Shown piece by piece: positions 11,950-53,045 of a stretch of DNA of 64,000 nucleotides. The DNA is from Oikopleura dioica. Taxonomy: Eukaryota > Animalia > Chordata. Position numbers and translations under genes: made by a program. Every line of letters begins with the position of its first letter. Positions within the stretch are counted from its first letter, which is position 1. The DNA is taken from assembly GCA_907165135.1 (NCBI GenBank), contig OU015568.1, positions 11,594,001 to 11,658,000 on the forward strand, given 5' to 3'. The notes under the pieces were generated by a model. It saw only the letters and a program-made list of their open reading frames with translations. It had not been told where the DNA came from and ran no database searches.

Positions 11950-13306
11950 TAGGGTCGGAAATTTCAGGGCCATGATCACGGTAGGCGCCGATATTTTTTT
12001 GGGTGAACCTATGGGAGGTACTCTTCCAGAAAATGCACATGGCCCTCGCTTAACCCAACATCGACAAGCAAAATTTAACCTGTTTTTGAAAATGGCCTTT
12101 TTACACAAAATTTATGTATTTTTACTATTAATTCCCCTTTTTTAAGCGTAAAAAATCAGAAATTTTTTTCAAAAATATATTTTTAACCCATAATCGGCGG
12201 TAAAAATTAAACCTATTTTTGGAAAAATTGTTATAATTCGCGAAAATCATGTTTTTATTGTTAAAACTTATAATTTATGCGGGCCGTCTCAGCCCCGTTC
12301 CTTGATTTTTGAATTTAAGGGGCTTGACGGCCCTTCGGGCCGTCTCAGCCCCGTTCCTTGATTTTTGAATTTAAGGGCTTGACGGCCCTTCGGGCCGTCT
12401 CAGCCCCGTTCCTTGATTTTTGAATTTAGGGCTTGACGGCCCTTCGGGCCGTCTCAGCCCCGTTCCTTGATTTTTGAATTTAAGGGGCTTGACGGCCCTT
12501 CGGGCCGTCTCAGCCCCGTTCCTTGATTTTTGAATTTAGGGGCTTGACGGCCCTTCGGGCCGTCTCAGCCCCGTTCCTTGATTTTTGAATTTAAGGGGCT
12601 TGACGGCCCTTCGGGCCGTCTCAGCCCCGTTCCTTGATTTTTGAATTTAAGGGGCTTGACGGCCCTTCGGGCCGTCTCAGCCCCGTTCCTTGATTTTTGA
12701 ATTTAAGGGGCTTGACAAAGGCTTGGATTTCTGAGTTGATCAATCTCAGTTTTGTCCCCAGCCCCACCCACATCCATCATTATAAAAATTTAATTTATGC
12801 TAGCTTTTAGCTTTATTATGGTTCTGATTTCAGGATTTATTTTTTCGAGAGTTTCTTTCAATTCTTTGATTTATATTCCCATGAACTCGCGGGGTCAATT
12901 TTATTGAAATTAGAATAAATATTACTGATATTTTTGCCTGTGAAAGGGCGTTTATTTCTTATATTGATTTGTTATGGATAATAATGCATTTTTTATTATA
13001 AATATATCATTTTTTTAAAGAAAAAATTTTTTTTTCGAAAATCCGTTAATTTTCCCCTGTCGAAAATAGGTTAATTATTATTTTTGATTTTATTTATTTG
13101 ATTTTACACGCATAAAATACTTTTAAAAATAATCTTAATAGATAATTTTAATGAAAAAAGCTATTTTCAAAAACAGGTTAAATTTTGCTTGTCGATGTTG
13201 GGTTAAGGGAGGGCCATGTGTATTTTCTGGAAGAGTACATCCCATTGGTTCACCCAAAAAAATATCGGCACCTACCGTGATCATGGCCCGGAAATTTCCG
13301 ACCCTA
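11950..13306. mobile_element. Non-autonomous hAT-like DNA transposon (MITE), 1357 bp
   Basis: Imperfect TIRs of ~150 bp: TAGGGTCGGAAATTTC at 11950 and GAAATTTCCGACCCTA ending at 13306. 8-bp TSD GTTTACAT at 11942-11949 and 13307-13314. No transposase ORF. Confidence 0.9.
12281..12716 (+). repeat. Tandem array, 8 copies of a 54-56 bp unit inside the MITE
   Basis: Unit GGGCCGTCTCAGCCCCGTTCCTTGATTTTTGAATTTAAGGGGCTTGACGGCCCTTC starts at 12281, 12337, 12392, 12446, 12502, 12557, 12613 and 12669. Confidence 0.95.
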
Positions 13307-14147
13307 GTTTACATAAATAGAAAAAATGGGATGAGAAATCCGTGACTTCACCGTGTTTTAGCATGCTGCTGATGAATTACGAGGAAAAAAAAAGAAACAC
13401 TCGGATTAAAAGTGAGGTAAAAATAAGTGGCATCCGAGTGGAGTACGAACGGTTTTTGGGAGTAAGCGGGGTTACTGTATATCCATTTTTGTCAACAAAA
13501 ATGAATGCCCAAAAATATTGTTGAATACGAAATTTAGAGGTAAGGAGATAAATTTCCTATTCAACAAGAAATTGGATGGGTAAGTTAGTTAAAAAAGGGA
13601 TAAGATCAATCATAAAATAAATTGAACTTGGAAGAAAGCAACGGATTTTCTGTAATTTTCAGTAATTGATGAAATAGGCTACGTTAGGCTATCATGGTGG
13701 TACTCGAGCAAGAACTCGAGAAATGAGAGCTTGCTCTGTGTTAGGTAAAGTGGTTGGAAGTTTTTTTGTTAAATATAATAATAATTAATTAGTTAACTAG
13801 GAAGGTAAGGACGTTAGAAGCTGGATTTTTCGCGGGCTTTTTTCTCCTTCTCACGAATCTTCTCTTTCAAGGTTCGCTTTTCAGTTGTTATATACATGCA
13901 TGTCAGTAGCAGTTAGTTTTTTGCTTATCTACATTTGTTATCCGTTCACAAATGTTCTTGAGGTGTTTTAGTAATTGTTCTAAATTTCTCTAGAAAGTAT
14001 AGTCGGCCTCCGACTTGACGCCCGGAATCAGCTAGCCCATATTAGAAGCTTCCGCATATCTCAAAAGCCAAGCGCCGCCTAAGGCCACACTCATGAATAC
14101 GTGCTGATTAAGGCCGCTGGACTAATAACTAGTTAGCTACTGTAGAG

Positions 14148-17100
14148 TTAGAATTTGTAGTTTGGCATATGAACAATGACTGTTGTTTTATAAATGTGTT
14201 TAGGGGTTGAGTTCACTATATAACCAGCCTTGATAACGGAGTCTTGGTGGCCAGTAGACAGGTCGATATGTTCAGTGTGGGTAATGCCGTCCGCAGAGAT
14301 CTTCGAACGGGACTGAATTGAATATGATGAAAATGATTCTAGAGAGCTAGAAGGGCTTACTTTGGATCTACTCCTCGAGCGGGTCTTTAGCACTTCAGTT
14401 TTGACAATTTCCTTTTGCACCTTTCCATTTTGATCGACAAACTGCCTCTCGGTCACATTTTCCTCGATATACTTTTCCGGCAAGTCAGAGTCCTCAGAGT
14501 TGTCGGAAATTCTAGCGTCTCCGCCATCGTCAGCTTTCTTTTTGAGAGTCTCTTTCTCTGCCTTTTTCTGTTGCTTGAGTTTCTTCTTGAGCTCTTTTTG
14601 ACGCTCTCGCATCTCTCGCTGGAGCTCATTGAAATCTCGGTAACCCTTAATTTTCGTGTCACTCTGGGCGGCTTTGGGAGGATCAGGTGTTGTTTTCCCC
14701 TCGCTTTTCGTGGTTGATTTTCGCGGTTTAGCGGACGAGGAGGAAGTGGAGGACTTTTTCTTTTCTTCTGTTTTCTTTTTGGATTCTGGGACAGCTGTTT
14801 TTGCAGTTTTCGGGACTATTTCCTTTGACTTCTCTGGCTCGGACTTCGGCGGTTTGGAGATCTTTTCTGGCTCCACTCTTGGTATTTTGTTGTTGTTGTT
14901 ATCGACTGATGCTTCCTCAACTAGAAAACAAATATTAGATAAAAGATAATGGGATGTTTTTACCTTTGGCAGGTTTTTTCTTCTTTTTCTTCCTCTTGAT
15001 AGTTCCCGCAATAGCCGACTCGTTCAGAATCGCCGATTTCGATTTTACCGTCATTTCCGCTGCTTCACGTGGTAAATTATCGTCGCTACTGTCATCTGGA
15101 ATGGCTCTGGCACGGGCGTCCTTGACTCTCTTCTTTCTCGTAGCAGTTTTGGTCGGAATCGATTCTACAGATTGATGTTGGATGTCAGGTTCGGAGCCAA
15201 GCTTCATGTCGCTAATGATTGTCGCTAAAAATAGCGAGCTTTATATTTTTAGAATTTTGGAAGCATTACCACATCTAAGCTAGTATATTGCCATAACAAA
15301 TCAAATTTGTTACGGCAGAGGGGTACTTAGGAATATAAACCGCGTGTTTTGAATATTGAATATTGTAAATCAGATTAATTTTAAACATCTTCGGAAAAAC
15401 TCGTTTTGAAAACATCGTTATTTACCTTGAGCGGCGCTTTTCGATCGTAAATCATTGTCACGTCCAGCGAGTAAATTGAGATGAGGTTGAGAAGACGAAA
15501 GACCTTGCGGAGTTGGACTTGACCTTGGCAGATTTCTACATGCAATAAATAGAAAACGCAAGGAATGAATTATTGCTTACTCATATAGATGTTTTCGCTT
15601 TTCATAATCATCGTTGAGTTTTTGCTCGTCAGATTGTTCATCTGGCGCTTCAGGCTGCTGATTCATATGTTGCTGGACCCATTCTTCTGTTCTCGGCTTC
15701 GGACTTGGCTGCCTCTTTGCTCCGCGGCTTTTGATGCCGCTCAACAGTCCCCCACCAAAGGAGGCTGATTTCATCGACGAGTCAGAGTGCGCCGAAGAGT
15801 TGCCTTTTTCTAACAAGTCTTTTTTCTCGCGCTCCCGATCGGCTTTCTGGAGCTCAGCTTCTTGCGTGGCGTAGCGCTCATTCAGCGCCTGAATTATTCA
15901 AAATTTCAGTTGGGGAGTTTCAACGCGTCTTTTAAATAATTAATTTGCTTTCAGAGGTTCTTGTTTGGTTCTTGATTCGGCTGAGTTACCTGAACATGAG
16001 GACTCGTGACTTTGGCTGTGATGACGACTGGCTTTTTCCCTTCGGTAGTTCCTTCTGGCTTGCTTAAAAGTTTGTCAGCGATTTCGTTTGATATTTGCGT
16101 TGTTCCTGGTGGAAGTTCTGGGTCTGCGGGATCGATAGGCTAAAATCGGCATGAGATAAAAGAATGAAAGACTGAGGTCTACCTTGAGACGATTATCAAC
16201 ATCGCGATAATTAACATCGACTCTTTTCGAAATAGGCTTTTGCGTGCCGTTTTCAAGCACTTTACTGGCAGAGGATGATTTGATTGCTGATGAGCTGGAA
16301 GTGGATTTTTTCTTAGGTTTGATCTCTTTTGGCTTGATGCCCGTCAAGGCACGGATTTGCTATGAAAAGATTTCATTCAAAAATATATATTTTCGACAAA
16401 ATATATTCGATAAAAAAAGTTACAAACAACATACTAACATAGTATGGAAGCAAATCTAGATTTTAAGAGATGTATCGCCTAACGGTTATTCCAGTAATCA
16501 CCTGTAGTTGCGCTGGATTGAGGGTGTTCGAAGGCACGGAGGATTTTTCACTCGATGAAATGCTTATTGTCGACTGATTATTTTGATTGAAGTTGTTTAG
16601 CGCTTCTAAGTTTGTCGTCAGCGTCGGGCTCACAACTGGCTCACGCGGCTTTGGCCTATGAATGGGGCTTTTCCAAGCGCTTTCAGTGACAGTGTGCGAT
16701 CTCGTGACAGTCACTTCTGACTGTGGCTTAGGCTCGAGTATGGAGGACTTTTCAGCTGCTGGCTTGGCGAATGAACTCGTGAAGTTACTCGATTCAAAAT
16801 CAATTGTGAGGCCTTTCGTTCCTGAAAAGTTGCAAATTCGAGAAGAAGGAACGTGATTCGTCTAACCTTCGACGACCTCTTTTAAAAACGAAATGGAATC
16901 GTTACGCTTGACCTCTGGAATCGGAGATGGAGGCTCAGACTTGACGTAGTTGAGTTTTTCTGCTTGGTCATCTTAAAAGAATAATTTGAGAAGCTACTAA
17001 TCAAATTAGACTTTGAAACCTTCCAAAGAGGAAAACGCGCTGAGTTTTGACGAATCTTCTTCAATCGGCGGTTTTGGCGTTACCAATTCATCCGCATATT

Positions 17101-17272
17101 TCCGCAACTTATTGAGCAATACTCGTTCTTGAATCAGCTGCGGCCGCATGAAAATATCTCTCCTGTCGTGTTCTTTGAAGCCTTTCCTAGAGTCCAGATC
17201 AGTCTCTAATCCCAACTGTCTACTTGACCTTGGCGGCCTTGGCGTGCCAGGAGGTTTTAAAAATTTAAACAT
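14148..17272 (-). CDS. Large low-complexity Lys/Ser/Glu-rich hypothetical protein (possibly two genes)
   Basis: Series of minus-strand ORFs (17006-17281, 16463-16714, 16075-16347, 15577-15816, 14935-15207, 14148-15011) separated by short introns; no recognisable globular domain. Confidence 0.5.
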
Positions 17273-17459
17273 GGTTATCAAAATATATTTTCAGCTCCAA
17301 TTTATCTCGAAAACGAAGGGATTAAGCTTGGCTTTGATGGAGAAAGGCGCGAATTTGTCAGAATGAATTGAATAATAGGATTAATTAAAGGCCGCAGGGG
17401 TCAAAACCGAAGTCGGCCAATTTTGGTTGAAGGAGATTTTAATTCCCACGAAATAGAAT

Positions 17460-19050
17460 CTAGCTGTTATTTTCTTCTTTTGAACTCATTCCTGCTGGTA
17501 CTGGCTCAACTGGAGGTAGTCTCTGTCGGCCCTCATTGAGAAGCCATTTTGCAAGAAGCATCCTTTTTAGTTCTTCCTTATCAAACTCGAATTTTTCCAG
17601 CACCTTTTCTTCGATCTTCGTGACTTCGTCCGGAACGAGTCGGCCGTTGTTTCTCATTGATCCTTCTGAGACGAGATTTTCAAAAGTCCAAACAAGCGAG
17701 TCAAGAAGTTCTTGGCAGTGAATATAGGCCGAGGCCGCTGCTGGCCGGGGAAGACGCACCAGTGATTTCAACAATGGGCGGAGCTTGAGAGGATCTCTCG
17801 AGAGCGGGTCCATCGAGCGAAGGAACCAGATATCCACGTGGTTTACATAAACTGGCTTTCGCTGGATCATCCCCTTCAGTTCTTTCACGGCGTCTTGGAA
17901 GAGCGACTGCACTGCGTTGAATCCGAGGTCGATCGAAGGACTCAAAGTACCCAAGGCTACTCCCATCGCGCCAAAGGCCTCAGAAATGTTTCCTTTTTCG
18001 TGCTCTTTGTTCAATTTGTGATTGATCAATCTTTTGAGTTCCTTGACCAGAAGAGGGCGGAGGGAACGTACTTCGACTTCCACGTCCGACTTTGATTTTT
18101 GATAAGAAGCATCGCCCGTGCCATTCATAACTACGTCCTTGGAGATGGCTTTGACTAGTTCAAATCCAGCTTCTATAGCGCGTTGCTTATCCGTGAACTT
18201 TTCAAATTTTAGTTTTTGACTCTCCCTCGCTAAAATTCCCAATTCGCCGAGTAATCGTTCGGCTACGACGTGATAGACAACGTCGATTTCATTTCCCGCC
18301 GCCACAAGATCTGGATCGCGCCACTGATGGAGCTTGCGCGTGCGTTCTACTGCTGCACCCAATGCGTGCTTTTGAATATCGTCTACTGCTTTCAACTCTG
18401 AAGTTCGCCGGATAAAATCACCTAGAATGAGGTTCCACACTTCCTTTTCCGCGGGTGTTTCTACGCCGATAAAGAGCGGTTCCATGATAGGATGCGACAA
18501 GCAGATCGTATAATCTGCTGGTGACGGTTTTTCTTTTATTTTCTCGGAAATTTCTTTCGGCGTATCTGTTTGCAACAAATACGCCGTCCGCTTGGTCCAC
18601 AGTTGCCGCCATTGCTCCGCAGCGTGGAGAATGCAGTAGCCGGACGGGCGCAAACTGTACTTGGGCTTGGCGGCGCTAGAATAATGCTCCTTCGTTTCGT
18701 AAGCTTCGAAGGAATAGTCCGGCCTGGCGACACAATAGAGTTTCTTCCATTTCTTGCCGAGCGTTGGCGCTTTTATCCAACACCACGATTCGTGAAGCGC
18801 TCGATTAAAAGACTTCCAGGTGCGTCGTTTTAGTTTCCAAGCTATGTCTGGTTCCTAGAAGGATTTAATGACACGCGTTGAATTCAACACTGACCTTAGT
18901 GGCTTCCTTTTCTTCGAGTACGGAGAGAAAGAGGGCTTGGGCCAGAGCAAGTCTGTATTCATTCGTGAGCGCTTTTACTTCTTGAGCTGCTGCCTGGCGC
19001 AAGAGTTCTTCAGTCGACGCAGAGACGAGCGACGACGCCACATCACCCAT
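17460..19050 (-). CDS. NIBAN: Niban/FAM129 family PH-domain protein
   Basis: N-terminus MGDVASSL; KKWKKLYCVARPDYSFEAYETKEHY...SGYCIL, TICLSHPIMEPLFI..ETPAEKEVWNLILGDFIR and GNEIDVVYHVV align by eye with FAM129B motifs. Intron ~18857-18892. Confidence 0.8.
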
Positions 19051-19099
19051 CCCATTGACGATCGAAAGATTACGACGACCTGATGATCTAAAAACTAGA

Positions 19100-19806
19100 A
19101 ATCATAAAACAGTGAATTATCAGGAAAAATGGTGTCAAATTTTGGATTCCACTGAAATGGGAATGAGGATAATTGGTTCTGCTGTTCACATTCAGACCTT
19201 GCTGGTGATCAACCTTGGAGAACTGACCCAAAATCAGAAGCCAAAGAAGCGTTCACTAAATTCTGTAAGCTACAGAATATGACTCAAAATTGACCATTAA
19301 AAAGAATACGCGTGAGGAGACCAAGTATGAGACTCTTAAAAGAGTAGAAATTTACTGAAAGTAAAAGCTCATTTTTAATTGTTGCTGCCAACAACTTAAT
19401 GTCGTAATAAAGAAAATTCTTGACTTGAATTCGACTAATTGGTAACTTGAACTATCATGATTTTTTTTTATTAATGGTATTTAAGTCGAAATCACGATAT
19501 GCAAATTTTCTCTAATTTTTCAATTTTGTGGTTTTCTTGAGTGACTGGCAAAAATGTGGAGTGGACTTTGATTGGCCGTTTGGGCGCACTCCACTGAGCG
19601 TCGCGTGGGATAAATTCCGCAGTTTTTTGCTGCTCAAAATAGCCAGTTAGCTCCTCAGAGGTCTTATGGCTTCCAGTTAGGCATGGGATCGAATGCGCCG
19701 CGGTTTGTAAGAGAAATCCCTGTTTAGAGAGATATTTTCTTCCAAATTTCAGAAAAAATTCGGATGTTTTATGGTCTTTCATTTTCGCGAGAAAAATTGC
19801 AAACAA
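19100..19806 (-). CDS. Possible small hypothetical gene
   Basis: 104-aa ORF at 19492-19806 plus a downstream exon-like segment; no recognisable family. Confidence 0.3.
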
Positions 19807-20094
19807 ACACGTGATTTCACATTCCTACAGTGGTTTTTGAAAATGAACCTCTTTAGCAGCTAAAGTTTAGCTAAAACAAAATTTCTCTAGAACGTCGATA
19901 ACCAGATCGATATCTAGAAACTTTTGGCCCAAAAATGGCCGCCAACTTTCAAATTTTCTACGGTTCTTCTCGAGAATCCATTTTCCATTCCAAAATCTCA
20001 TCATTTCGATTTTCATTTTAGAGAAACATTTAACTTCATTTATCGATCCTATTTACCGTAAAATTTCCGCAAAGTTCACCCCAGGCTTCAAGCC

Positions 20095-23000
20095 ATGGAC
20101 CTCAACACCCTAGACAATCACCATCCTGGTACTCTTGAAGTACTCCAGGAGCTCAATTTGAGCAACAACCCGCTAGCTGGCTATGCACCCGAGTTCGAAG
20201 AGGAAGACGAAGAAAATGAGAACCAAGTTGTTTATGAAAGCAAGGTCTGCATTCCATCCGGTATTCTTTTATTAATCTACTTAGGTGGACACCAGTCAAA
20301 ACACCCAAAATGCAGAGGATATGTTCATGCTCCAGAAAACTGAAGACTCAGAAGGCAATTCCGCTCCTTCCGCTTCAGATGAGCTTTCAGTTGAGAATTC
20401 TACCGGAAGCGACTCCCAGAGCATCCAATACGACCAGAAACCAATCCTATCCCTAGAACCTCAGCAAGCTTCAGTTCCTTCTGTTCCCTCAGTTGCATCC
20501 TCTATCCCATCAGCGAACGGGAATTTCGTCGTTTACGACGATGAAAACAACGTCTTTGATGTCAAAACACATACAGAGCAAATCGATGATGTCCAGAGTT
20601 ACGAACTTGCTCCAGTTGATGATAGGAAAGCGTCAAAAATATTCATATAAAAATTTATCTTCAGATGACCTTAGCTTCTTGTTTTTGACGTCAAAAAAAG
20701 ACAAGTGATTTCTATTCCCGATAATATGGAAATTCAAAAGACAGCAGAGGAACTCAATGACAGTAAATTCCATGTCTTTCAGCTCCAGGATGTCATCGAA
20801 AACGTCCACCGCACCGAAAACTTCAGAGAACAAATGATCGGCTCTCTGAAGCTTAATATGGCGAGCCAACAGAGAATAAAAGATGTCATCAAGAGACTTG
20901 GCATTCGACTATCGGCGGTCAAAGAGCGTCACATGGTCGTCTTTGGGATGATTAACGGTGTTTCGGACAGAAATCGGGGGAGGAAGAGCATGAATTTGCC
21001 GATGTTCAGCAATGGCTACTTTTGTCAGTCGGATACCGGTTGGCGCGTCCCACCGGGCGTAAGCGATAACGACTTGGAGAAACAGAAGATATGTGAGCCC
21101 TTCGAGTCGGTCAACCAAGATCCTCCAAGAAAATGGTCGCCGGAAGAAGACAGAGCCTTGAAGAAGGGTGTTATCGAGGCAGCTTCAAGACCCGTCCTGA
21201 GAACAGTAAGGCAGTCAATGAAAAAGGCTCAGAAAGAATCGATGGACTCGAAGCTCAAAAAACTCAACACAGATCTCCACAAGCTCAGCAAACAATCCGA
21301 AAGAGATCTGATCGGTGGAAGACATCAGGAATACGATTGGGAAGTCACTTCGATTACCCATCTAAAGAGTCTGAGAACTCCTGACGAGTGTCGATTAAGA
21401 TGGTCAAACGCGGCACATTTAGATATCAAGCGATCGCACTGGTCAAGCGATGAGAAAAAGAACCTGCGAAAGTGGGTTAAGAAATTCGGCGAAACTGGAT
21501 GTTGGAGGAAAATCTCCGAAAAGATGGTCAGCAGAACTGCCATTCAGTGTTGCGTCCAGTGGACTAAAATGCAGCAGGACGAAGAAAAGGGAAGACCGTG
21601 GACGAAAGAAGAAGATAGAATTCTGCTCAAAGCAGTTGAAGAAAGTCAACTTCATGAAGACGGTCATTTGGGAGTTAGCTGGAACACGGTAGCTGCTCAA
21701 ATCAACGGAAGAACACCGCAGGTATAATTACACTGACGATAACTAAACTAACAATATTTCTAGCAATGTACACACCGCTGGAAGAAGTCTGTCGATCCAA
21801 AGATCAAGCGAGGCGGCTGGGACATTAGGGAGGACGTGAAACTCCTCCGCGCTGTTCAAGAAATGGGAGAAGAGTGGGCGCGGATCCGAGACTCAAAAGT
21901 GCTCGAAGATGCGGATGGGAGCTTCAGAACTGACATGCAGATGCGTGATCGTTATCACAACGCTCTGAGCCATGGGCATATTCGAGGACCTTGGACGCAA
22001 GAGGAAGATAAACTTCTTGAAGAAGGCCATAAAATTTATGGAAATCAGGTATTTCGAGATGTTGTTTCTCTTTTTTATTCATTTTTAGTGGACGATGGTT
22101 GCTTTGCATGTACAAACGCGTAACGATGGTCAGTGCCTGAAACGATGGCATCTAAGAGAAGATCATATTGCGAGGAAAAAGCCCATCCCGTACATAAAAT
22201 CGACAAAAGCATGTAAAGTTGAGAAGATTCGCACGCTCAAGAAAGCGATCGCACTGGAAGCTCACGAAAAAGCCTGCCACAAGCAAGTCGCTCGTGATCC
22301 AAATCTTGTCATCTTGAACAGGGACATTTATCATAAAGATCCTGCTAGTAAGTTATCACACTTTTTCTCTCGTAATTATTATTTTTAGCACTTGTGGAGC
22401 AGAACAAAGATGCGATGTTCAACATGTATCCAGACCTTTATGGAAGAGAAAAGAACCCTCTACCTGCGCTTCTGGCACCTGAGAATACTGACAATTCGTG
22501 CACAGCGCTGGTACCCAAGAAGCTGGATGACAAGGGCTACCAGCCAGATACATTCAAACGCTTCCAGGATGTCATCTCTCGAATGCGTAACAAGGGCAAA
22601 GCGGCAGAAAACGGGCTTTTCTTCAAACACATCATCGGAAATCTCAAATTCAAGAACTGGAAAGGACAGCATTTTGGGAAACTTTTACGAACTGCTGACA
22701 AATGCAAGGACCCAAACGTCTGGATTCCCCCCTCTGCTGTACCGATGAAACTCACTGAGATGCTCTTTGATTCGGTGGAGAGAAAGAAGATTGAAACAAG
22801 AGCGCAATTTTTAAGTAACCGACCTAGTGTCGAGAGAAGGAAAGGATAACAGAAATTTCAAGATTGTTTTAAAGTAAAAAACTTTTATTATCCACTGAAG
22901 ACGACGAAATCAACTAAAGGCAATTCTAAAAATGACACTTTCGGCCTCTGTTGCCTTGCGAACAGCGGCTCCAGAAGTAACGATGATGGAAGGTGATCCT

Positions 23001-23324
23001 GAAACACTAGAGGCCGAGCTAAACTCAGCCATGCAGAGCGGTGGCAACGAATATGCTGAGCCTCGAATGGCTTCTGAACAACCCGACCCCACATACGAGA
23101 ATTATTCCAACTTTTCCGGAAACTTACCCATTCCAATGAATCACTATACACCGCTTGCTTGTTTGCCAGGGCCGAGTTCCAGACCTGATTTCGAGGCTGA
23201 ACCTCTCTCGAATGAAACTCTCCGCGTTGGAGGTCGATATGTACTCCTCGATGAAAGAGATCAAGAACGCACTGCTGTTGAGCTGGATCAAATGTTCGAC
23301 GCCGTGATGGTAGATGCCCCTTAG
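20095..23324 (+). CDS. SNAPC4: snRNA-activating protein complex subunit 4 (SNAP190), Myb repeats
   Basis: PMFSNGYF...PP motif; WSPEEDRALKKGV; YDWEVTSITHLKSLRTPDECRLRW; four further Myb repeats (WSSDE, WTKEED, WDIRED, WTQEED) in the same order as SNAP190. The last exon (22932-23324) is tentatively assigned. Confidence 0.85.
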
Positions 23325-41287: not shown

Positions 41288-41997
41288 ATGTCGAAAGCTG
41301 TCGTCGATGAAAATTTCTGGCATACATTCCAGATGACTGAAGAGTAAGTATTTTTGCCATTCATAAAATTATAACTTGATAATTGCTGAAACAAATAAGA
41401 TTCGGACGTGTCTGTAATTTATTTTCAAGGGATTTCCGGATGCGAGTCGCAGTCAGTCCTCATCACACAAACCCCCGATCCGCCACATTGGATTTCTGGA
41501 GAAAAACTACTCCGTACAACCAATATCGAGTGATCCAGGATCGAAGAAGAAAACAGATGAACCAGCCTACCAGGTAAATGAAACCTCTGATTATTCATTT
41601 TACGTTTTTTTTCTAGTTCTTCTCATACGAAAGAAGAGCACATGATCATTGCCCAAGCTCTTGCTTCGATGGAAAAACGACGTGTCGGTACTCGTTTCCT
41701 TGATAGAGAGGTAAGAAAGCGACGATGCATGAAGAGTCTGATCTTATTAACCGTCGGAGAACGAGATTATCTCGCCATAATTACCCTCCGTTCGTGTTCA
41801 TAGTGCCATAAAACGGAAAGGCGCTACCAATCATTTGGAATTATGCTCTTTTAGAAGACGGAATTTCTAAAAAAAAGGCTCCGCCCTTTACGTCACTTCG
41901 CATTCCTAATCAACGTTTTAAGGTCACCGAAGACGATCACGAAAAGCCCTTGATGGTCATTCTCCAAGAACAGACGGAGAAGTGCTCCCTCATGTAA
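41288..41997 (+). CDS. Small hypothetical protein (~120 aa, 4 exons)
   Basis: GT-AG splicing gives MSKAVVDEISGHTFQMTEE/DFRMRVAVSPHH...QPTS/SSHTKEEHMII...FLDRE/VTEDDHEKPL...CSLM*. Confidence 0.5.
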
Positions 41998-42373
41998 ATC
42001 CATTTTTCCGACAAGAAACAAAAAGTCCTGCTGGATCGTCCAGACCGGATGTTTTCTTATTGTACCTTTCGCCTTTTTGCATCCTTCCAGAACAAAAAAT
42101 AATAAATCTTAACTATTTTGAATTGTGTTCAGTCATTTAATGCTGTTTTGTATTTTTTTCCGATACTTGAACTTTTACAAACAGGTGTCGACAGGTTTAG
42201 AGCGATTGAAAGAGATAAAGATTGCTATAGGCAGACTTTACATTAATTAAAAATTAAAAACAGAATTTCGTATTTACAAAGATGAATTGAATTAACTTGG
42301 AAATATTATCCAAAAATCACTTGGAAACATTTGAGGCAGTTTTCGTCGATTATCTAGTCTTGTAGGCAAGTGA

Positions 42374-44963
42374 TTAGTTTTGAGGATCTTCAGAAGAGGG
42401 GAGCATTACCGCCACTTCAGGAGCAACGCGATTTTGAAAGACTGGCCTCCGCTCGCTGACAGGGGAAGGTGGAATCGTAAGGACATTTTGAGTGTCGCTC
42501 GGGGCTTCTTTTAGAGAACTTAGTGCGCCAAGGATCTTGTCCAGTTTATCATCTGCAAAAAAATTAATTGAGAAAAGCGCTCTATTACTTACCGATGTCG
42601 GAAACCTTCTTTTCGAGAGTTATCAGCCTCCCATTCATTGAACTTCTTGAAATGTAACCAGCAGAAGATCCGTTTTTTCGATCAAGTTCAACTGTTGACG
42701 CCACGCCGAGGATGTTTTCCATTCTAGCGACCCAAATTAGATTTCGTTGCTGCGATGATTCTAACCTGTTTTGCAAGAGTTTCACGCGAGCGAGCATGTC
42801 AACATGGCCAGCAGAGTATTGTTCGATGACGTCTTTGACATCATAAGGCCGCAGTGCTTCCTTGAATTTCCTCTTCGCAACGCAGAATTTCATCATTCGA
42901 ATGAATCGTAATGCAATCTTTTGCTTCTCGGTCAGCTGATTGTCTGCCGCTAAATATTCGTCGTCGTCGATTTCTGTGATGCCATTTTGGTTTACGTCTA
43001 AAACATTGAAGTCGGTGATTTTATCTCGACAAGTTACCTGATTTCAATCCGGGTGAGTTGAGTTGATGATGTTTCGTAGCAGAAACGCGGCGAACAGGAA
43101 ACAAGTCTTCACTCGCGAGCTGTGGAGAAAATGAAAACAGATTCTTGATGTTATTTTTGGTCTCATCTTTCGACTTCTCGATCGATTTCTTGCAGCTAAA
43201 GTCGATCAAAACATGTTCAAAAACGGGTTTCACTTACAGAGCAGTTCTAGCTTGATTCCAAGTAGCTATTGAGCTTGACTCTTCATCGGCTGCGTAGTTT
43301 CTCCAAACCGCCTGTATCAACAACGCAGCTGGGTTTCGTCGTCTCGCAAAGTGCTTCTGGCGATGCTGCTCCTGAACTTTCAAGGCGAATCCAGTACCGA
43401 GGATTCCCGCTGGCAACGCAAAGAATGCCATTCCAACAACGGCGAAAAACGACGCAATCGCTTGACCAGTTGTTGTTGCTGGAACTTTGTCTCCATAACC
43501 AATCGTCGTTAGGGTTATAAAACCCCACCAGAGGGAGTCCCCAAATGTCAAAAAATGGCAAGTCGGAGCACTTCCATCCTCAAAGATTGTTCTATTGGCG
43601 GCCATTTTGCATTCATCGGTCGTAAACTCAACTTGCCAGATGATGTAGCTGACGAAGATCAAGACAAGAAAAGCAATATAGATTGCCGTCAAAAGTTCCT
43701 TGAGTAAGGCTGTGAAAGAAAAATTATTTTCGTTTGTTCGTAAAAACATGGCGATCTATGTAAATTTTTCAACGGATTTTGACAAGATCAGTGCGTCAAT
43801 TTTGTAATATTCTCGCAATGGCTGTCCTGAGCATTTATCGTCTAATTTCATTCGCGATCAAAAGTACGTCAAAAATAATTTGCGAGAAAATAAATAAAAA
43901 AAAATCCACAACCCTTTCCTTGGAGTGAGCATAGACAACGGATCCCAGTAGTTTCCATGTTCCGCCTCTTCTATCGACTCTCACCATTCGTATAATCTGG
44001 AGGAAACGCAGTGCTCTGAGAGCGGAAGCGGCGAAGAGACCCTTCTCGATCGTTAGGTTTCCAAAGATCAGAATCCAGGAAGCAATAACAACCATCAAGT
44101 CGATGATGCAAAAAGGCCGTCGCGCGAAGTGAAGGCGCCCGAGTAGACCTTGATACCTGGGAGTCTCGGTTATGGAAATGAAGAGAAAAAACGTGACAAG
44201 ATACATGGAAACATCTGGTTTCCCCAATGCTCACCTTGATCTACAGCCAGCCGACCAGAGACGAAGGATGTATTCGAATGTGAATTGCACCATTATGATC
44301 TTTTCCAGAATGTTCAGCACGTATTCCGAAGTCGAGGAGATTCGGTCTTCGTTGTCGTCGTATACATCTCCAGTGATGAACATTGTGAGGATGAGACATG
44401 CAAAAACAAGGAGAAACCTTAATCTTTTGTTTACAAGAACTAAGCCCAAAGTGTGTTGTTTACGTATAAATGTGATAATAAGTACTGATGTGGTGCCTGT
44501 TAAGCACCGGGCGTTCGAGGATATTATAGAGATTTGGCTGGAGGTAGTGATAAAAGAAGGAATATCTGGTGCCCGAATAATTGGAGTTGGAGCCGAAAGA
44601 GCGCATCCGAGATCTTCCCTTCCCGCTTCCCCGTTGCAAGCGTTTGAGTTTTTGCTCATGATACTGAGTATCTCTTATTCCGCCGACTGTTCCGTCTCGG
44701 TTCAGGACATTTCTATCAAGCCCCGGAAGGCTGGCTCTCTGACCGTAGCTTCCAGAACCGTATCTTAGCTTTGGCTCGGCATTACGCCTGAAAATAGGAG
44801 CCCCACTATGCGTGGTACTGTGCGATTGCCAGAACGGGTTAGAAATCTCATCCACGGTATCGCTCGAACCAGTGACTGAGCATGTCAGTCCAGAATCGTC
44901 GGTCACTTGTAAAGCAGGCGTTACAGCGAATCTTTCGTTGGTTGAAGAACTCAAATTTTCCAT
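42374..44963 (-). CDS. KCNQ: KCNQ (Kv7) voltage-gated potassium channel
   Basis: [13 protein letters not shown]; S4 [37 protein letters not shown]; pore [18 protein letters not shown]; [25 protein letters not shown]; [21 protein letters not shown]. Confidence 0.97.
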
Positions 44964-46889
44964 TTTGACAAGATGGCTTGATTATTTTTTCCAAGCTTTT
45001 ATATGGCTACCTTAGTGGTGGCATCAAAGGGGCTGATATTGCGGAAGAAGAAGGGTGCAGCTTTCGCCTGCTGCACCTGCTTTTATATTAGGGCGCGAAC
45101 GGCCCAATAAAATGCTAGTTTTGACAATTTTAGGAGCCTTATCGGCGTCAGTCCGTGAACTTCTTGAGCATTCCCGACAATATTAGCGCAGGAAAAATCT
45201 AAAACCCCATTTTAGAATGAACCAAGATAACCAAACTTTAAGAGTTATGGCATTTTCTTGTCAGTACTTGTCAGCCATTAAATCACCCTAACGAGTGAAA
45301 ATGAATATTCAACCCAACTCTGTATCGCTGTTTGTATTCTAGCGCCTGTTGCGCGTGCCGTGTGTCTTCCATAACTCAGTTTCACAAAAAATATAGCGAA
45401 AAAAAGCGAAAAGGGATGAAAAGAGGCACCTCTCTTTGCGGATTGTGGCTCATTAACGCAGCAGCTGGGGAAGTTGGGGAAGTGAGCTTGCAACGAGCAG
45501 GCCTCGACTCACCTCGTCACACCCTTCACTCAACTCCCTGACACTTACATACACGGTATTCAGAATCTGACACACATTTAGGTAAAATGGTTTGAGTACT
45601 CACACTGTCATATGATAACATGCAGCAATCTTTGAAGTCTTGAAATTCGGCCGCTCAAGAATATCTGTATCAGGTTTTAACTACCCCTTTAGATCGACAG
45701 AATCAATGATCGAGAGACTTTGAAACCCTTTTCAAAGATGAAATTCATCGCTTGGAAGTAGCAAGTGCTCCTAGAATGCCGAATCTGGAAGCTCTTGATC
45801 TGCTTTCCATGAAGTGATTTTCGCATAAGCGCTTCTCTGATGTAAGAGTCTTTGCTGCTCATTTTGCAGATTTAAAGTTAAAAATATGAGATTTACGAAA
45901 TGCTTTTTTAGTGTGGTAGTTAATTGAGTTGAAAGAAATCCGAAAGCGATAAATTCGAGTAACATTTTACGATTAATTTCAAGCTGTCAGCTAAAACTTT
46001 AAAGAGGGTTTGATTTAATACGTTTTGTAAAATAGACCGCACAGTGGACCCTTTTAATAAAGCCGTACATTGTCTCTTATACTTTTTTGGGAAAAAATTC
46101 TCAACAAAATAAATAATATTGATGATTTTTTAGCGAACTAATTTAGCGGTACTTTTGACAACGCTAAGAAAGACGAGCAATAAAGGATAAAATTGACCCA
46201 ATCCGAACAGGACGTTTCCCATAGATCCATTCCGACGCAGAATCGCGAATACTCTTTTTACGGCGATATTATTGTAAACACGTTTATGATGATAAATGGA
46301 CATTGGCGTGTTTTTGCCTGTTAGCAATTTATTCGCTGGGAAACGAAAGTGTCGTTTTATCGCCTTCCCCGCGTCACTCGTCTTTTGAGAAATCGTTTTT
46401 TGTCCAGGAAAATCCGCCTTCGAAATCGAGCATGTGTAGGCTTCCCGCGGCTGTTTTCATTTTCCAGGTTCTTTTGCAGAGACACACCAAACTTACAGAA
46501 TATATGCACCATGACACGCCTTACAAAACTGCACTAGCCGATTTTTCGAAACGGCTCATTTTTGTGCCTTTTTTGGCGATTTTTGATGAGAAAAATGTAT
46601 ATAGATGAATTGTTCCAAAATTTAAGGGTGTTCCCACATACCGATTATTATCATTTTTGGATATGTTGTAGAAGAGGGTTCGCTGATTCTTTGGACCACT
46701 GGACGAATTCTGCAGACCTCGATTTCGGTACTTTCTAGAGCTTCAAAGTCGACAAAGTCTGCCAGATATGAAATTTCAAAATTTGCAACTTTTGATCTAC
46801 GCATTCTACGGTGACGATTTATAGCTCATCTTGGAGCTTATGAACCACTGAATTCAGTAAGGTGTTTTTTCTGAACCAGCTGGTCATTC

Positions 46890-47600
46890 TGGCGGTTCGT
46901 CGCGGTTCAAGCATTTAAAAGAGCCGGGATCCGGAAATATGTATATCAAAATGCATATTTTTTGACGACGAGTCGTTTCAACACATTTTCGAACCGAACC
47001 ACTTGGCTAACCGCCCGGTTCACAGCGGTTCAAAGCGGTTCAAGGTCTGAATGTTCACAAAATATTGAAATATGTATATCAAAATGCTTGTCTAGTCAAA
47101 AGGAGTCTTTTGGACAGATTTTCGAACCGAACCACTTGGCTAACCGCCCGGTTCACAGCGGTTCAAAACGGTTCAAGGTCTGAATATTCACAAAATATTA
47201 AAATATGTATATCAAAATGCTTGTCTAATCAAAAGGAGTCTTTTGAACAGATTTTTGAACTAAACCGGACAGCTAACCGCCCGGTTCACAGCGGTTCAAA
47301 GCGGTTCAAGAACTGAATGTTCACAAAATATTGAAATATATATATCAAAATGCTTGTCTAGTCAAAAGGAATTAATTCAACAGGTTTTCATACCAAACCG
47401 CTCGGTTGACCGCCCGATTCACAGCGGTTCGAGGCGGTTCAAGCTCTTTTAAATTGCAAAATGCTGAAATATGTACATCAAAATGCTTCTCTACTTATGA
47501 AAAATCATTAAAACAGGTTTTCGAACCAGACCGCTTGGTTGACCGCCCGGTTCACAGCGGTTCAGGGCAGTTCTAGCTCATAATACTCACAAATTGCTGA
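46890..47600 (+). repeat. Subterminal array of 133-bp units (5 plus 1 degenerate), left arm
   Basis: CCCG(G/A)TTCACAGCGGTTC recurs at 47014, 47147, 47280, 47413 and 47546, an exact 133-bp period. Confidence 0.9.
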
Positions 47601-47655
47601 AAAAAATAAATCAAAATGCTTCTTTACTCATAAGAAATTGTACGTTTGTACAATG

Positions 47656-49385
47656 AAGTCTGAGACGGGGCCAAGCCGACCCGAAGGGGAGGCCAGGACC
47701 ATTTGAACAATTGAGTCTGAGACAGGGCCAAGCCGACCCGAAGGGGAGGCCAGGCCATGTTATACAATCAAGTCTGAGACGGGGCAAAGCCGACCCGAAG
47801 GGGAGGCCAGGCCCGTTTGAACAATTTAGTCTGAGACAGGGCAAAGCCGACCTGAAGGGGAGGCCAGGCCCGATTGTACAATCCAGTCTGAGACAGGGCC
47901 AAGCCGACCCGAGGAAGAGACGAGGCAAGTTTGAACAATTAAGTCTGAGACGGGGCAAAGCCGACCCGAAGGAGAGGCCAGGCCTGTTTGAACAATTGAG
48001 TCTGAGACAGGGCCAAGCCGACCCGAAGGGGAGGCCAGGCCCATTTGAACAATTGAGTCTGAGACAGGGCCAAGCCGACCCGAAGGGGAGGCCAGGCCCG
48101 GTTGTACAATCAAGTCTGAGACGGGGCAAAGCCGACCCGAAGGGGAGGCAAGGCCCGTTTGAACAATTTAGTCTGAGACAGGGCCAAGCCGACCCGAAGG
48201 AGAGGCCAGGCCCGTTTGAACAATTGAGTCTGAGACAGGGCCAAGCCGACCCGAAGGCGAGGCCAGGCCCGAATGTACAATGAAGTCTGAGACGGGGCCA
48301 AGCCGACCCGAAGGGGAGGCCAGGCCCATTTGAACAATTGAGTCTGAGACAGGGCCAAGCCGACCCGAAGGGGAGGCCAGGCCCGGTTGTACAATCAAGT
48401 CTGAGACGGGGCAAAGCCGACCCGAAGGGGAGGCCAGGCCCGTTTGAACAATTTAGTCTGAGACAGGGCAAAGCCGACCTGAAGGGGAGGCCAGACCCGA
48501 TTGTACAATCCAGTCTGAGACAGGGCCAAGCCGACCCGAGGAAGAGACGAGGCCCGTTTGAACAATTAAGTCTGAGACGGGGCCAAGCCGACCCGAAGGG
48601 GAGGCCAGGCCCGGTTGTACAATTCAGTCTGAGACGGGGCCCACCCGACCCGAAGGGGAGGTCAGGCCCGATTGTACAATCCAGTCTGAGACAGGCCCAA
48701 GCCGACCCGAAGAGGAGGCCAGGCCTGTTTGTGCATTTTAGTCTGAGACGGGGCTAAGCCGACCCGAAGGGGAAGCCAGGCCCGTTTGAACAATTTAGTC
48801 TGAGACAGGGCCAAGCCGACCCGAAGGGGAGGCCAGGCCCGATTGTACAATCCAAACTGAGACGGGGCCAAGCCGACCCGAAAGGGAGGCCAGGCCCGTT
48901 TTTACAATTTATTCTGAGACGGGGCCAAGCCGACCCGAAGGATGGGCCAGGCCCGTATGTACATTTTAGTCTGAGACGGGGCCAAGCCGACCCGAAGGGG
49001 AGGCCACGCCCGATTGTACAATCCAGTCTGAGACAGGCCCAAGCCGACCCGAAGAGGAGGCCAGGCCCGTTTTACAATTTAATCTGAGACGGGGCCAAGC
49101 CGACCCGAAGGATGGGCCAGGCCCGTATGTACATTTTACTCTAAGACGGGGCCAAGCCGACCCGAAGGGAGGCCAGGCCCGTTTGTACATTTAAGTCTGA
49201 GACGGGGCCAAGCCGACCCGAAGGGGAGGCCAGGCCCGTTTTTACAATTTAATCTGAGACGGGGCCAAGCCGACCCGAAGGATGGGCCAGGCCCGTATGT
49301 ACATTTTAGTCTGAGACAGGGCCAAGCCGACCCGAAAGGGAGGCCAGTCCCGTTTATCAATTCAGTCAGAGTAAGGACCAAGGCG
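47656..49385 (+). repeat. 57-bp satellite, left arm (~30 units)
   Basis: Unit AGTCTGAGACGGGGCCAAGCCGACCCGAAGGGGAGGCCAGGCCCGTTTGAACAATTT, e.g. at 47828 and 47885. Confidence 0.95.
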
Positions 49386-49514
49386 ACCCGAAAATGATGT
49401 TTTCCTTGCACCGTTATCGATAATTATCTCTGTAAATCGGGAACAAATTCAAATTTTCTAACATTATCTCCTTAAAAACAACAATTCAACAAAGAACTAA
49501 GACAAAAATAGGAA

Positions 49515-52500
49515 AAGCCTCCCCTTCGGATCCTCTTAGCCCCGACTCAGACTTAATTGTACAAACGGGCTTAGCCTCCCCTTCGGGTCGGCTTTGCCCC
49601 GACTAAGACTGAATTGTACACTCGGGCCTGGCCTCCCTTCGGGTCGGCTTGGCCCCGTCTCAGACTAAATAAACGAACGAGCCTGGCCTCCCCTTTGGGT
49701 CGGCTTGGCCCCGTCTCAGACTGAATTGTACAACCGGGCCTGGTCTCCCTTCGGGTCGGCTTGGCCCCGTCTCAGACTTAATGTACAAACGAGCCTGGCC
49801 TCCCTTCGGGTCAGCTTGGCCCCGTCTCAGACTGAATTGTTCAAACGGGCCTGGCCTCCCTTCGGGTCGGCTTGGCCCTGTCCGAGACTGGATTGTTCAA
49901 TCGGGCTTGGCCTCCCTTCGGGTCGGCTTGGCCCTGTCTCAGACTAAATTGTTCAAACGGGCCTGGCCTCCCCTTCGGGTCGGCTTGGCCCTGTCCCAGA
50001 CTGGATTGTTCAATCGGGCTTGGCCTCCCTTCAGGTCGGCTTTGCCCTGTCTCAGACTTAATTGTTCAAACGGGCCTGGCCTCCCTTCGGGTCGGCTTGG
50101 CCCCGTCTCAGACTTAGATGCACAGACGGGCCTGGCCTCCCCTTCGGGTCGGCTTGGCCCCGTCTCAGACTTTATTGTACAATCGGGCCTGGCCTCCCTT
50201 CAGGTCGGCTTTGCCCTGTCTCAGACTAAATTGTTCAAACGGGCCTGGCCTCCCCTTCGGGTCGGCTTGGCTCCGTCTCAGACTTAAATGCACAAACGGG
50301 CCTGGCCTCACCTTCGGGTCGGCTTAGCCCCGTCTCAGACTAAAATGCACAAACAGGCCTGGCCTGCTCTTCGGGACGGCTTGGCCCTGTCTCAGACTAA
50401 ATTGTTCAAACGGGCCTGTCCTCCCCTTCGGATCGGGTGGGCCCCGTCTCAGACTGAATTGTACAACCGGGCCTGGCCTACCCTTCGGGTCGGCTTGGCC
50501 CTGTCTCAGACTAAATTGTTCAAACGGGCCTGTCCTCCCCTTCGGATCGGGTGGGCCCCGTCTCAGACTGAATTGTACAACCGGGCCTGGCCTCCCCTTC
50601 GGGTCGGCTTGGCCCCGTCTCAGACTAAATTGTTCAAACGGGCCTCGTCTCTTCCTCGGGTCGGCTTGGCCCTGTCTCAGACTGGATTGTACAATCGGGC
50701 CTGGCCTCCCCTTCGGGTCGGCTTTGCCCCGTCTCAGACTTGATTGTACAACCGGGCCTCAGACTAAAATGCACAAACAGGCCTGGCCTCCTCTTCGGGT
50801 CGGCTAGGGCCTGTCTCAGACTGGATTGTACAATCGGGCCTGGCCTCCCCTTCAGGTCGGCTTTGCCCTGTCTCAGACTTAATTGTTCAAACGGGCCTGG
50901 CCTCCCCTTCGGGTCGGCTTGGCCCCGTCTCAGACTTGATTGTACAATCGGGCCTGGCCTCCCCTTCAGGTCGGCTTTGCCCTGTCTCAGACTAAATTGT
51001 TCAAACGGGCCTGGCCTCCCCTTCGGGTCGGCTTGGCTCCGTCTCAGACTTAAATGCACAAACGGGCCTGGCCTCACCTTCGGGTCGGCTTAGCCCCGTC
51101 TCAGACTAAAATGCACAAACAGGCCTGGCCTCCTCTTCGGGTCGGCTAGGGCCTGTCTCAGACTGGATTGTACAATCGGGCCTGGCCTCCCCTTCGGGTC
51201 GGCTTGGCCCTGTCTCAGACTAAATTGTTCAAACGGGCCTGTCCTCCCCTTCGGGTCGGGTGGGCCCCGTCTCAGACTTAATTGTTCAAACGGGCCTCGT
51301 CTTTTCCTCGGGTCGGCTTGGCCCCGTCTCAGACTGAATTGTACAACCGGGCCTGGCCTCCCCTTCGGGTCGGCTTGGCCCCGTCTCAGACTAAATTGTT
51401 CAAACGGGCCTCGCCTCTTCCTCGGGTCGGCTTGGCCCTGTCTCAGACTGGATTGTTCAATCGGGCCTGGCCTCCCCTTCAGGTCGGCTTTGTCCTGTCT
51501 CAGACTTAATTGTTCAAGGGCCTGGCCTCCCCTTCGGGTCGGCTTGGCCCCGTCTCAGACTTGATTGTACAATCGGGCCTGGCCTCCCCTTCAGGTCGGC
51601 TTTGCCCTGTCTCAGACTAAATTGTTCAAACGGGCCTGGCCTCCCCTTCGGGTCGGCTTGGCTCCGTCTCAGACTTAAATGCACAAACGGGCCTGGCCTC
51701 ACCTTCGGGTCGGCTTAGCCCCGTCTCAGACTAAAATGCACAAACAGGCCTGGCCTCCTCTTCGGGTCGGCTAGGGCCTGTCTCAGACTGGATTGTACAA
51801 TCGGGCCTGGCCTCCCCTTCGGGTCGGCTTGGCCCTGTCTCAGACTAAATTGTTCAAACGGGCCTGTCCTCCCCTTCGGGTCGGGTGGGCCCCGTCTCAG
51901 ACTGAATTGTACAACCGGGCCTGGCCTCCCCTTCGGGTCGGCTTGGCCCCGTCTCAGACTCAATTGTTCAAACGGGCCTCGTCTTTTCCTCGGGTCGGCT
52001 TGGCCCCGTCTCAGACTGAATTGTACAACCGGGCCTGGCCTCCCCTTCGGGTCGGCTTGGCCCCGTCTCAGACTAAATTGTTCAAACGGGCCTCGTCTCT
52101 TCCTCGGGTCGGCTTGGCCCTGTCTCAGACTGGATTGTACAATCGGGCCTGGCCTCCCCTTCAGGTCGGCTTTGCCCTGTCTCAGACTAAATTGTTCAAA
52201 CGGGCCTGGCCTCCCCTTCGGGTCGGCTTTGCCCCGTCTCAGACTTGATTGTACAACCGGGCCTGGCCTCCCCTTCGGGTCGGCTTGGCCCTGTCTCAGA
52301 CTCAATTGTTCAAATGGGCCTGGCCTCCCCTTCGGGTCGGCTTGGCCCCGTCTCAGACTTGATTGTACAATCGGGCCTGGCCTCCCCTTCAGGTCGGCTT
52401 TGCCCTGTCTCAGACTAAATTGTTCAAACGGGCCTGGCCTCCCCTTCGGGTCGGCTTGGCTCCGTCTCAGACTTAAATGCACAAACGGGCCTGGCCTCAC

Positions 52501-53045
52501 CTTCGGGTCGGCTTAGCCCCGTCTCAGACTAAAATGCACAAACAGGCCTGGCCTCCTCTTCGGGTCGGCTAGGGCCTGTCTCAGACTGGATTGTACAATC
52601 GGGCCTGGCCTCCCCTTCGGGTCGGCTTGGCCCTGTCTCAGACTAAATTGTTCAAACGGGCCTGTCCTCCCCTTCGGGTCGGGTGGGCCCCGTCTCAGAC
52701 TGAATTGTACAACCGGGCCTGGCCTCCCCTTCGGGTCGGCTTGGCCCCGTCTCAGACTTAATTGTTCAAACTTGCCTCGTCTCTTCCTCGGGTCGGCTTG
52801 GCCCTGTCTCAGACTGGATTGTACAATCGGGCCTGGCCTCCCCTTCAGGTCGGCTTTGCCCTGTCTCAGACTAAATTGTTCAAACGGGCCTGGCCTCCCC
52901 TTCGGGTCGGCTTTGCCCCGTCTCAGACTTGATTGTACAACATGGCCTGGCCTCCCCTTCGGGTCGGCTTGGCCCTGTCTCAGACTCAATTGTTCAAATG
53001 GGCCTGGCCTCCCCTTCGGGTCGGCTTGGCCCCGTCTCAGACTAA
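49515..53045 (-). repeat. 57-bp satellite, right arm (~62 units), inverted relative to the left arm
   Basis: Plus-strand unit GGGCCTGGCCTCCCCTTCGGGTCGGCTTGGCCCCGTCTCAGACTAAATTGTTCAAAC. Confidence 0.95.

Follow-up and report, generated by a model that had tools for sequence, protein, structure and literature searches.

Related hairpin minisatellites in non-autonomous, divergent hAT-type elements of Oikopleura dioica

The window analysed here is a 64,000-nucleotide stretch of the Oikopleura dioica genome (G000:C1:11594001-11658000), and it raises a simple question: why do two transposable elements within it, a 1.36-kb mini-element and a 7.8-kb foldback element, carry tandem hairpin repeats of almost the same length? 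The first-pass annotation of this DNA had described both elements, with TAGG ends, 8-bp target site duplications (TSDs) and internal arrays of 56- or 57-bp units, and all of these were found in place. It had also regarded the bodies of their terminal inverted repeats (TIRs) as unrelated, and the non-array parts of the mini-element and the foldback indeed have nothing significant in common (best BLAST E 0.14). The explanation that we favour, with moderate confidence, is that a passenger minisatellite was captured, resized and dispersed by non-autonomous elements of a divergent hAT type. Searches covered the O. dioica assembly OKI2018_I69 (64,281,565 bases in 19 contigs), published as 64.3 Mbp in 19 scaffolds (PMC8008620). 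The features of the two elements are as follows, in window coordinates (ORF, open reading frame).

11942-11949, no strand: left TSD of the mini-element, GTTTACAT, repeated at 13307-13314
11950-13306, + strand: mini-element, 1.36 kb, non-autonomous and of probable hAT type, with TAGGGTCGG ends; apparent deletion derivative of the 5-kb, ORF-bearing elements L002 and L003
11950-12112, + strand: left TIR, 92% complementary to its partner at 13144-13306
12280-12716, + strand: 56-bp hairpin minisatellite (type A), 7.9 units, 98% matches; hairpin -16.2 kcal/mol, z -6.7
12717-12850, + strand: tail of the type-A module, with a near-palindrome at 12731-12749 and a C-rich motif at 12754-12772 (G-quadruplex-type on the other strand)
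13307-13314, no strand: right TSD of the mini-element, GTTTACAT, the same 8 bp as on the left
46429-46436, no strand: left TSD of the foldback, AGCATGTG, repeated at 54266-54273
46437-54265, no strand: foldback, 7.8 kb, no ORF, TAGGCTT ends; family of at least 15 copies
46437-46933, + strand: outer unique part of the left arm, 98% identical to its mirror at 53767-54265
46934-47621, + strand: 133-bp subterminal repeats (5.2 copies), each with three 10-bp CGGTTCA-type motifs; mirror at 53079-53766
47643-49392, - strand: 57-bp hairpin minisatellite of the left arm (type B), 30.8 units
49393-49516, no strand: non-repeated centre of the foldback, ~124 bp
49517-53057, + strand: 57-bp hairpin minisatellite of the right arm (type B), ~62 units with a 228-bp higher-order periodicity; hairpin -10.7 kcal/mol, z -2.25
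54266-54273, no strand: right TSD of the foldback, AGCATGTG, the same 8 bp as on the left

Homology of the 56- and 57-bp units

The units were compared in an alignment (A4) made with MAFFT from one representative unit per array; it covers ten arrays of type A (56 bp) and 13 of type B (57 bp), each from a separate locus. The 23 units fill 57 columns in phase and without gaps, and 18 columns are invariant. Types A and B are 70% identical over the first 38 columns, which form a GC-rich core, and 38% identical over the last 19, which form an AT-rich spacer. Local alignment of the 56-bp with the 57-bp unit gave z = 6-10 against 1,000 shuffles, and the best circular ungapped match was 33/56, against a null of 23.0 ± 1.6 and a maximum of 31 in 5,000 shuffles. 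The similarity proposed in the first-pass annotation thus stands well above shuffled controls. Judged by their sequences the two units are homologous, and their equal period reflects plain homology, not compensating indels. Chance, or compositional convergence of GC-rich hairpins, was tested as an explanation and rejected, and we give it next to no credence. It could draw on the fact that just two short motifs had originally been noted, one of them at non-homologous positions, but it is contradicted by the gap-free, in-phase alignment over 23 arrays with its invariant columns, by the z scores, by the identical period and by the failure of any shuffle to reach the observed match.

The unit design described in the annotation, a GC-rich hairpin centred on CCCTTCGGG and followed by CCGTCTCAG, holds in part. 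Both 9-mers are present in both units, and CCCTTCGGG is a homologous motif in A4, within the ~38-nt homologous core. CCGTCTCAG occupies columns 24-32 in the 56-bp unit and columns 34-42 in the 57-bp unit, ten columns apart, and is therefore a common motif without positional homology. A search of the 64.3-Mb genome for the combined CCCTTCGGG/CCGTCTCAG motif gave 2,446 occurrences, and a reversed control gave none. The core hairpins of the two types fall in the same columns, with stems of 6+8 bp in type A and 5+4+3 bp in type B, and 85% of hairpin cells are paired across the 23 units. Pair 11-27 is AU in nine rows and CG in 12, a single event that separates the types. When arrays are compared with each other, variable columns number 4/36 in the core against 16/21 in the spacer for type A (Fisher p = 1e-6), and 11/36 against 17/21 for type B (p = 3e-4). 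To judge from these 23 arrays the constraint on the core is real, and the signal does not in itself demonstrate pairing as the feature that is kept. An Rfam scan of the mini-element returned sub-threshold chance matches only.

The type-A cassette and its hosts

The sequence beside the ten type-A arrays was aligned separately (A3). After eight of the ten arrays comes the same tail of ~110-130 nt, and in all eight homology stops at the same point. Within the tail are a near-palindrome and a run rich in C that reads as four runs of G on the opposite strand; in the window (12754-12772) and in L028-L035 this opposite-strand sequence is a canonical G-quadruplex-type motif, and the near-palindrome that precedes the run is centred on TGATCA. 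The type-A arrays of three families also share almost the same starting phase. A genome-wide count of tails, made with a 19-nt degenerate motif, gave 243 matches against 0 in a reversed-sequence control. Within the first 2.8 Mb of C1, which was unselected, a tail lies beside five of six type-A arrays and an array beside five of seven tails. Type A is a discrete module (cassette) made of an array and a conserved tail. Among the first 100 tail matches listed, 45 lie on C3, a 2.9-Mb contig of the size of the Y-specific scaffold, where the motif is heavily enriched.

Exact ends and 8-bp TSDs could be defined for five carriers of the cassette, which belong to four end families:

Window mini-element: TAGGGTCGG ends, clean 8-bp TSD
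L034 and L035: TAGGGTCAGG ends, clean 8-bp TSD
L032: TAGGGTCC ends, clean 8-bp TSD
L030: CAGGGATG ends, clean 8-bp TSD

The ends of the window mini-element and of L034/L035 are 70-75% identical. The ends of L030 and L032 (first 150 nt) have an identity of 0.47-0.60 to those of the other hosts, where the shuffle baseline is ~0.54. The tail of L030 is nevertheless 0.79-0.83 identical to the tails of the other hosts (0.61-0.65 for L032), and the type-A core is ~96% identical across hosts. Transposon ends are the constrained part of an element and are expected to diverge more slowly than a non-coding interior. A cassette that is less diverged than the constrained ends around it therefore points to transfer between families or to selection on the cassette. 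For the 56-bp type, the annotation's idea of a satellite that moves between elements is borne out by a tail common, at 79-84% identity, to hosts whose ends lie at the shuffle baseline. The L034-type host family has ~4 copies, and for the CAGGGATG group at least 20 arms were counted, many of them beside tails. As expected of a satellite derived from transposable elements, the repeat lies inside elements at many loci and also forms arrays outside them (L027, L029 and L040). L029 has an array and tail without a host inverted repeat, and at L027 an array of 68 units extends over 3.8 kb with neither a tail nor inverted repeats. Candidate inverted repeats around L027, L029, L031 and L040 were rejected as junk alignments.

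The arrays differ greatly in length, from 1 to ~70 units, and are usually 97-100% homogeneous internally. At three loci of the L032 family the 635-bp left parts are essentially identical; according to search coordinates, the distance from left part to tail motif is 588 bp in one copy and 1,762 bp in another, a difference of 21 units. Again by coordinates, one of these three copies has ~31 units and another 9.7. In the L034 family, a copy of 728 bp has roughly one unit, one of 1.8 kb roughly 21 and one of 3.0 kb roughly 41.

Two further observations concern the hosts. Inverted tRNA-like sequences flank two cassette-bearing elements (L030:1604-1669 and 4136-4201; L034:2827-2940 and 7092-7203). 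A 156-bp piece of the left part of L032 (L032:1752-1907) is itself a repeat, with at least 30 genome copies at 80-83%.

The mini-element, its relatives and the foldback family

The first-pass annotation had called the 1.36-kb element a miniature inverted-repeat transposable element (MITE). It is non-coding and has TIRs (~163-168 nt, 92% complementarity) and a TSD. Its family has only ~4-6 members genome-wide, short of the high copy number of a classical MITE, and it is better termed a low-copy deletion derivative. The same ends are found in L002 (C1:6501301-6506272; 4,972 bp), where they match the first 332 bp and the last 377 bp of the mini-element at 81-87%. The 4.26-kb interior of L002 is replaced in the mini-element by 648 bp of foreign filler, which consists of the array, the tail and 76 other bases. 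Both unit and tail are absent from the ORF-bearing ~5-kb relatives L002 and L003. A 4.4-kb relative without an ORF (L001), whose ends are 95% identical, lacks the tail and has a single 56-bp unit in the corresponding position. Such a structure reads as that of a classic internal-deletion derivative with filler DNA. The TSD of L002 (L002:494-501) is also GTTTACAT, and its flanks are unrelated to those of window 11942-11949, as for independent insertions with a coincidental match. The recurrence of GTTTACAT where two related elements inserted independently suggests that target choice is strongly selective.

The ORF of L002 has 583 codons (L002:2553-4301; G000:C1:6503352-6505100). A profile search of 1.8 billion representatives recovered 44 relatives, and in an alignment of 31 sequences D237, D303, C332, H335, R405 and N412 are near-invariant. 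Standard databases gave little: 11 ORFs from six elements and 16 homologues had no Pfam match at E <= 0.01-1, the hAT C-terminal dimerisation domain (PF05699), BED and DUF659 had no match in the L002 ORF or the 16 homologues, and the Protein Data Bank held no sequence-level or profile match for the family. An AlphaFold model reached a predicted local distance difference test score (pLDDT) above 90 over approximately residues 220-570, with the N-terminal 200 residues poorly modelled. Foldseek matched this model to Hermes at E = 5.8e-7, and VIA-align superposed residues 203-583 of the model on Hermes with Z 18.5 and a root mean square deviation of 3.1 Å over 295 residues. The next folds were the P element (Z 10.5) and integrases (~8-9). 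The model has an RNase-H-like DDE core split by an all-alpha insertion domain, together with a CxxH motif downstream of the second D; the third acidic residue was not located. The hAT membership suggested in the annotation is thus supported at the level of a predicted fold, not by Pfam, and no BED domain was seen. On the strength of the model, the L002 ORF family is best placed as a very divergent hAT lineage that is missed by standard domain-based annotation.

The same ORF family occurs in seven further elements, namely L003, L022, L024, L025, L026, a copy nested on C5 and the metagenome contig L042, and all elements of the family have TAGGGT ends. Their 8-bp TSDs are exact in L022, L024, L025, L026 and the nested C5 copy; L003 agrees at six of eight positions, and the contig of L042 includes one end only. 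No element ends were found on a further metagenome contig, L041. An annotated homologue of an element-borne ORF is Oidioi.mRNA.OKI2018_I69.chr1.g10.

Both window elements and at least 20 related ones have exact 8-bp TSDs, and the terminal motif 5'-YARNG is present in all defined elements as TAGGG, TAGGC or CAGGG. The TSDs of TAGGGT and CAGGG elements follow the nTnnnnAn pattern of the Ac/Hermes type (T2 in 11/12, A7 in 12/12), whereas those of TAGGCTT elements, including the window foldback, have A4-T5 (nnnATnnn) in 8/8 and no T2/A7. Given these different target patterns, the mini-element and the foldback were probably moved by different enzymes. The elements resemble Hermes and Ac in their 8-bp TSDs, YAGGG-type ends, nTnnnnAn targets (TAGGGT families) and D, D and CxxH motifs, and are unlike them in the Pfam profile of the ORF and in the targets of the foldback. 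A canonical PF05699 hAT, a different element from the L002 family, is also present in ~7 copies (L036, L037 and L038; G000:C1:634000-643900 and others). Around it lie tandem repeats of its own, with units of 21, 30, 62 and 84 bp, so tandem sub-repeats are common in the DNA transposons of this genome. A 40/41-bp tandem repeat rich in CACC/GGTG, with local palindromes, was noted at the unrelated loci L018:4317-4763 and L037:5468-5686.

The window foldback has a 124-bp centre between arms of 2.96 and 4.75 kb, which are built of repeats of 133 and 57 bp. Its outer 497 bp have 55 matches in the genome, which pair into at least 15 elements, and exact 8-bp TSDs were found for the window copy and eight further copies. 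In every copy examined the 57-bp arrays lie in mirror orientation. Sub-families have subterminal repeats of 133, 141 or 266-276 bp and also vary in the spacer of the 57-bp unit, with the core kept. The foldback relatives L020, L033 and a composite on C5 have TAGGGTCGG-type ends and ~200 bp of internal arm sequence in common with the window foldback. The composite (C5:8579950-8593421; L021 and L040) is a non-autonomous element of 13.5 kb with TAGGGTCGG ends and an exact 8-bp TSD; three foldback modules in tandem make it up, and a 5.0-kb TAGGGTTGG element, which has an 8-bp TSD of its own, is nested among them. This locus was considered as the autonomous partner of the foldback family and rejected, as the ORF belongs to the nested TAGGGTTGG element.

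Competing explanations and significance

The favoured course of events can be set out as a model. Both window elements would be non-autonomous members of a diverse, recently active and divergent hAT-type group of O. dioica, and both arrays would descend from one ancestral 56/57-bp minisatellite with a ~36-38-nt GC-rich imperfect hairpin and a freely evolving AT-rich spacer of 19-21 nt. The satellite would be a passenger, outside the transposition machinery. Type A would travel as a cassette of array and ~110-130-nt tail, entering several unrelated TIR families either as filler DNA, through template switching in the repair of the double-strand gap left by excision, or by ectopic recombination between elements. 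Template switching in gap repair is established for Ac/Ds and P elements. Type B would have come to occupy the inner portion of the long inverted arms in the foldback family. Once inside an element, an array may grow or shrink by slippage or unequal exchange; hAT cut-and-paste transposition would bring it to new loci, and some arrays may outlive or escape their carrier. According to one comparative study, DNA transposons of Oikopleura went through a very recent burst (PMC4350176).

Several points weigh against this explanation. The locus sample is small (40 loci) and partly selected by similarity. Only half of the ten sampled 56-bp arrays lie in elements with YAGGG ends and 8-bp TSDs: L028 and L031 have the cassette in a different inverted-repeat element, without YAGGG ends or 8-bp TSD, and around three more (L027, L029 and L040) no inverted repeats were detected. 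The annotation would have been refuted by arrays lying mostly outside TIR elements; with seven of ten in inverted-repeat elements this is not the case, yet the majority is not a clean one. Autonomous elements with matching ends, for which the annotation had suggested a search, exist for the mini-element in L002 and L003; no ORF-bearing partner with TAGGCTT ends was found for the window foldback. We infer the capture route by analogy with Ac/Ds and P elements, and it was not observed here; the reason for core conservation is likewise something that we infer. Within arrays the core varies about as much as the spacer (ratios mostly ~1), and the constraint signal therefore rests on the between-array comparison of only 10 + 13 arrays. 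Finally, a pure passenger model does not predict a near-invariant core with diverging tails and ends, which could reflect selection for function.

This last point can be developed into an account in which the hairpin core and tail form a selected, exchangeable cassette, with purifying selection on a ~36-nt sequence across at least six transposon families. The core might drive its own capture and amplification, for example by hairpin-induced template switching, or might give its carrier an advantage through host-factor binding, escape from silencing or better excision. We regard this proposal as rather unlikely. One of the two readings offered in the annotation was a functional cis-module kept across a transposon family, in which the hairpin array supplies binding sites for a transposase or host factor and promotes transposition or protects the element. 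The near-invariance of the ~36-nt core where spacers, tails and host ends have diverged would fit such a role, as would the hairpin potential kept in both types with one compensatory pair, and the presence of arrays in every foldback copy seen. Against it, neither unit nor tail is present in the ORF-bearing L002 and L003, arrays can have anything from 1 to ~70 units overall and from ~1 to 41 within one family, the cassette sits in families with unalignable ends, the window families differ in their targets in a way that suggests different transposases, and within type-B arrays variation is greatest in the left hairpin arm. The proposal is weakened accordingly and we judge it unlikely; a transposase-binding role for the 56-bp type in particular is unlikely.

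Two other accounts concern the movement of the cassette itself. It could be an independent non-autonomous mobile element, for instance a hairpin-dependent, Helitron/Helentron-like one, nested in or near hAT elements. Its boundaries are discrete and reproducible, with nearly the same starting phase in three families and the same tail end; tail matches number 243 while host families are small; arrays such as L029 have a tail and no host inverted repeat; and the tail contains a palindrome. However, no target-site signature, empty site, Helitron-type ends or coding partner was found, and many tails adjoin CAGGGATG arms, so that some of the copies are explained by the usual amplification of MITEs. 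An independent element is therefore an improbable explanation. It is still harder to believe that nothing moved at all, and that every carrier descends from one array-bearing ancestor whose ends diverged faster than its interior. The ends of the mini-element and L034/L035 do retain a recognisable identity, and their arrays begin about equally far from the end, but the ends of L030 and L032 are at the shuffle baseline while the tail of L030 is still ~80% identical (that of L032 only 61-65%); constrained ends should diverge more slowly than a non-coding interior, and the autonomous relatives lack the cassette. Vertical descent is thus quite improbable, and dispersal of a passenger minisatellite by hAT-type carriers is the explanation that we retain.

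Known systems offer several parallels. The Drosophila elements FB and Galileo also have arms of tandem sub-repeats, little or no centre and array lengths that vary between copies and arms, and they differ from the elements described here, which have 8-bp TSDs and hAT-like ends. FB makes 9-bp and Galileo 7-bp TSDs, and they belong to the MULE-like and P superfamilies, respectively. In Drosophila virilis, the Tetris foldback and the DAIBAM MITE share ends; tandem repeats lie in the arms and have escaped into arrays (PMC4079207). The likeness to the present case lies in a non-autonomous foldback with tandem repeats in its arms, a companion MITE and longer arrays outside intact elements (compare L027). 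However, Tetris and DAIBAM share terminal sequence and not the satellite, whereas the Oikopleura pair shares the satellite and not the termini. The Tetris unit is also ~220 bp long, compared with 56/57 bp here, where there is a hairpin core, 8-bp TSDs and relatives that encode a transposase with a predicted Hermes fold. The Cg_HINE elements of Crassostrea gigas are non-autonomous Helentrons with satellite-like central repeats (PMC7492417). They too are mosaics of flank and repeat modules, with related repeats in differently flanked elements and short arrays dispersed in the genome; they are rolling-circle Helentrons, whereas the O. dioica carriers are of the cut-and-paste kind (hAT type), have inverted ends and 8-bp TSDs, and contain a repeat with a fixed tail. 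Literature searches returned no description of these Oikopleura elements, with Repbase and Dfam outside the comparison.

The O. dioica elements are a clear new example of a known link between transposons and satellites, not a new kind of system, with Tetris/DAIBAM and the oyster Helentron satellites as the closest cases. Transposon-borne satellites are known, and the first step, in which a short repeat enters elements and moves between families, is rarely caught. Most of these elements belong to a hAT lineage that has diverged too far for Pfam to recognise, which matters for the annotation of larvacean transposons. Transposons of larvaceans have been linked to new introns. Should the cassette prove to be under selection, it would be something like an integron-type cassette for eukaryotic hAT elements. 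With ~240 cassettes and several low-copy host families with clean boundaries in a nearly gap-free genome of 64 Mb, the system is tractable: copies with identical flanks and differing array length, together with cassette-free autonomous relatives, make the capture, resizing and escape of a satellite testable across O. dioica assemblies.

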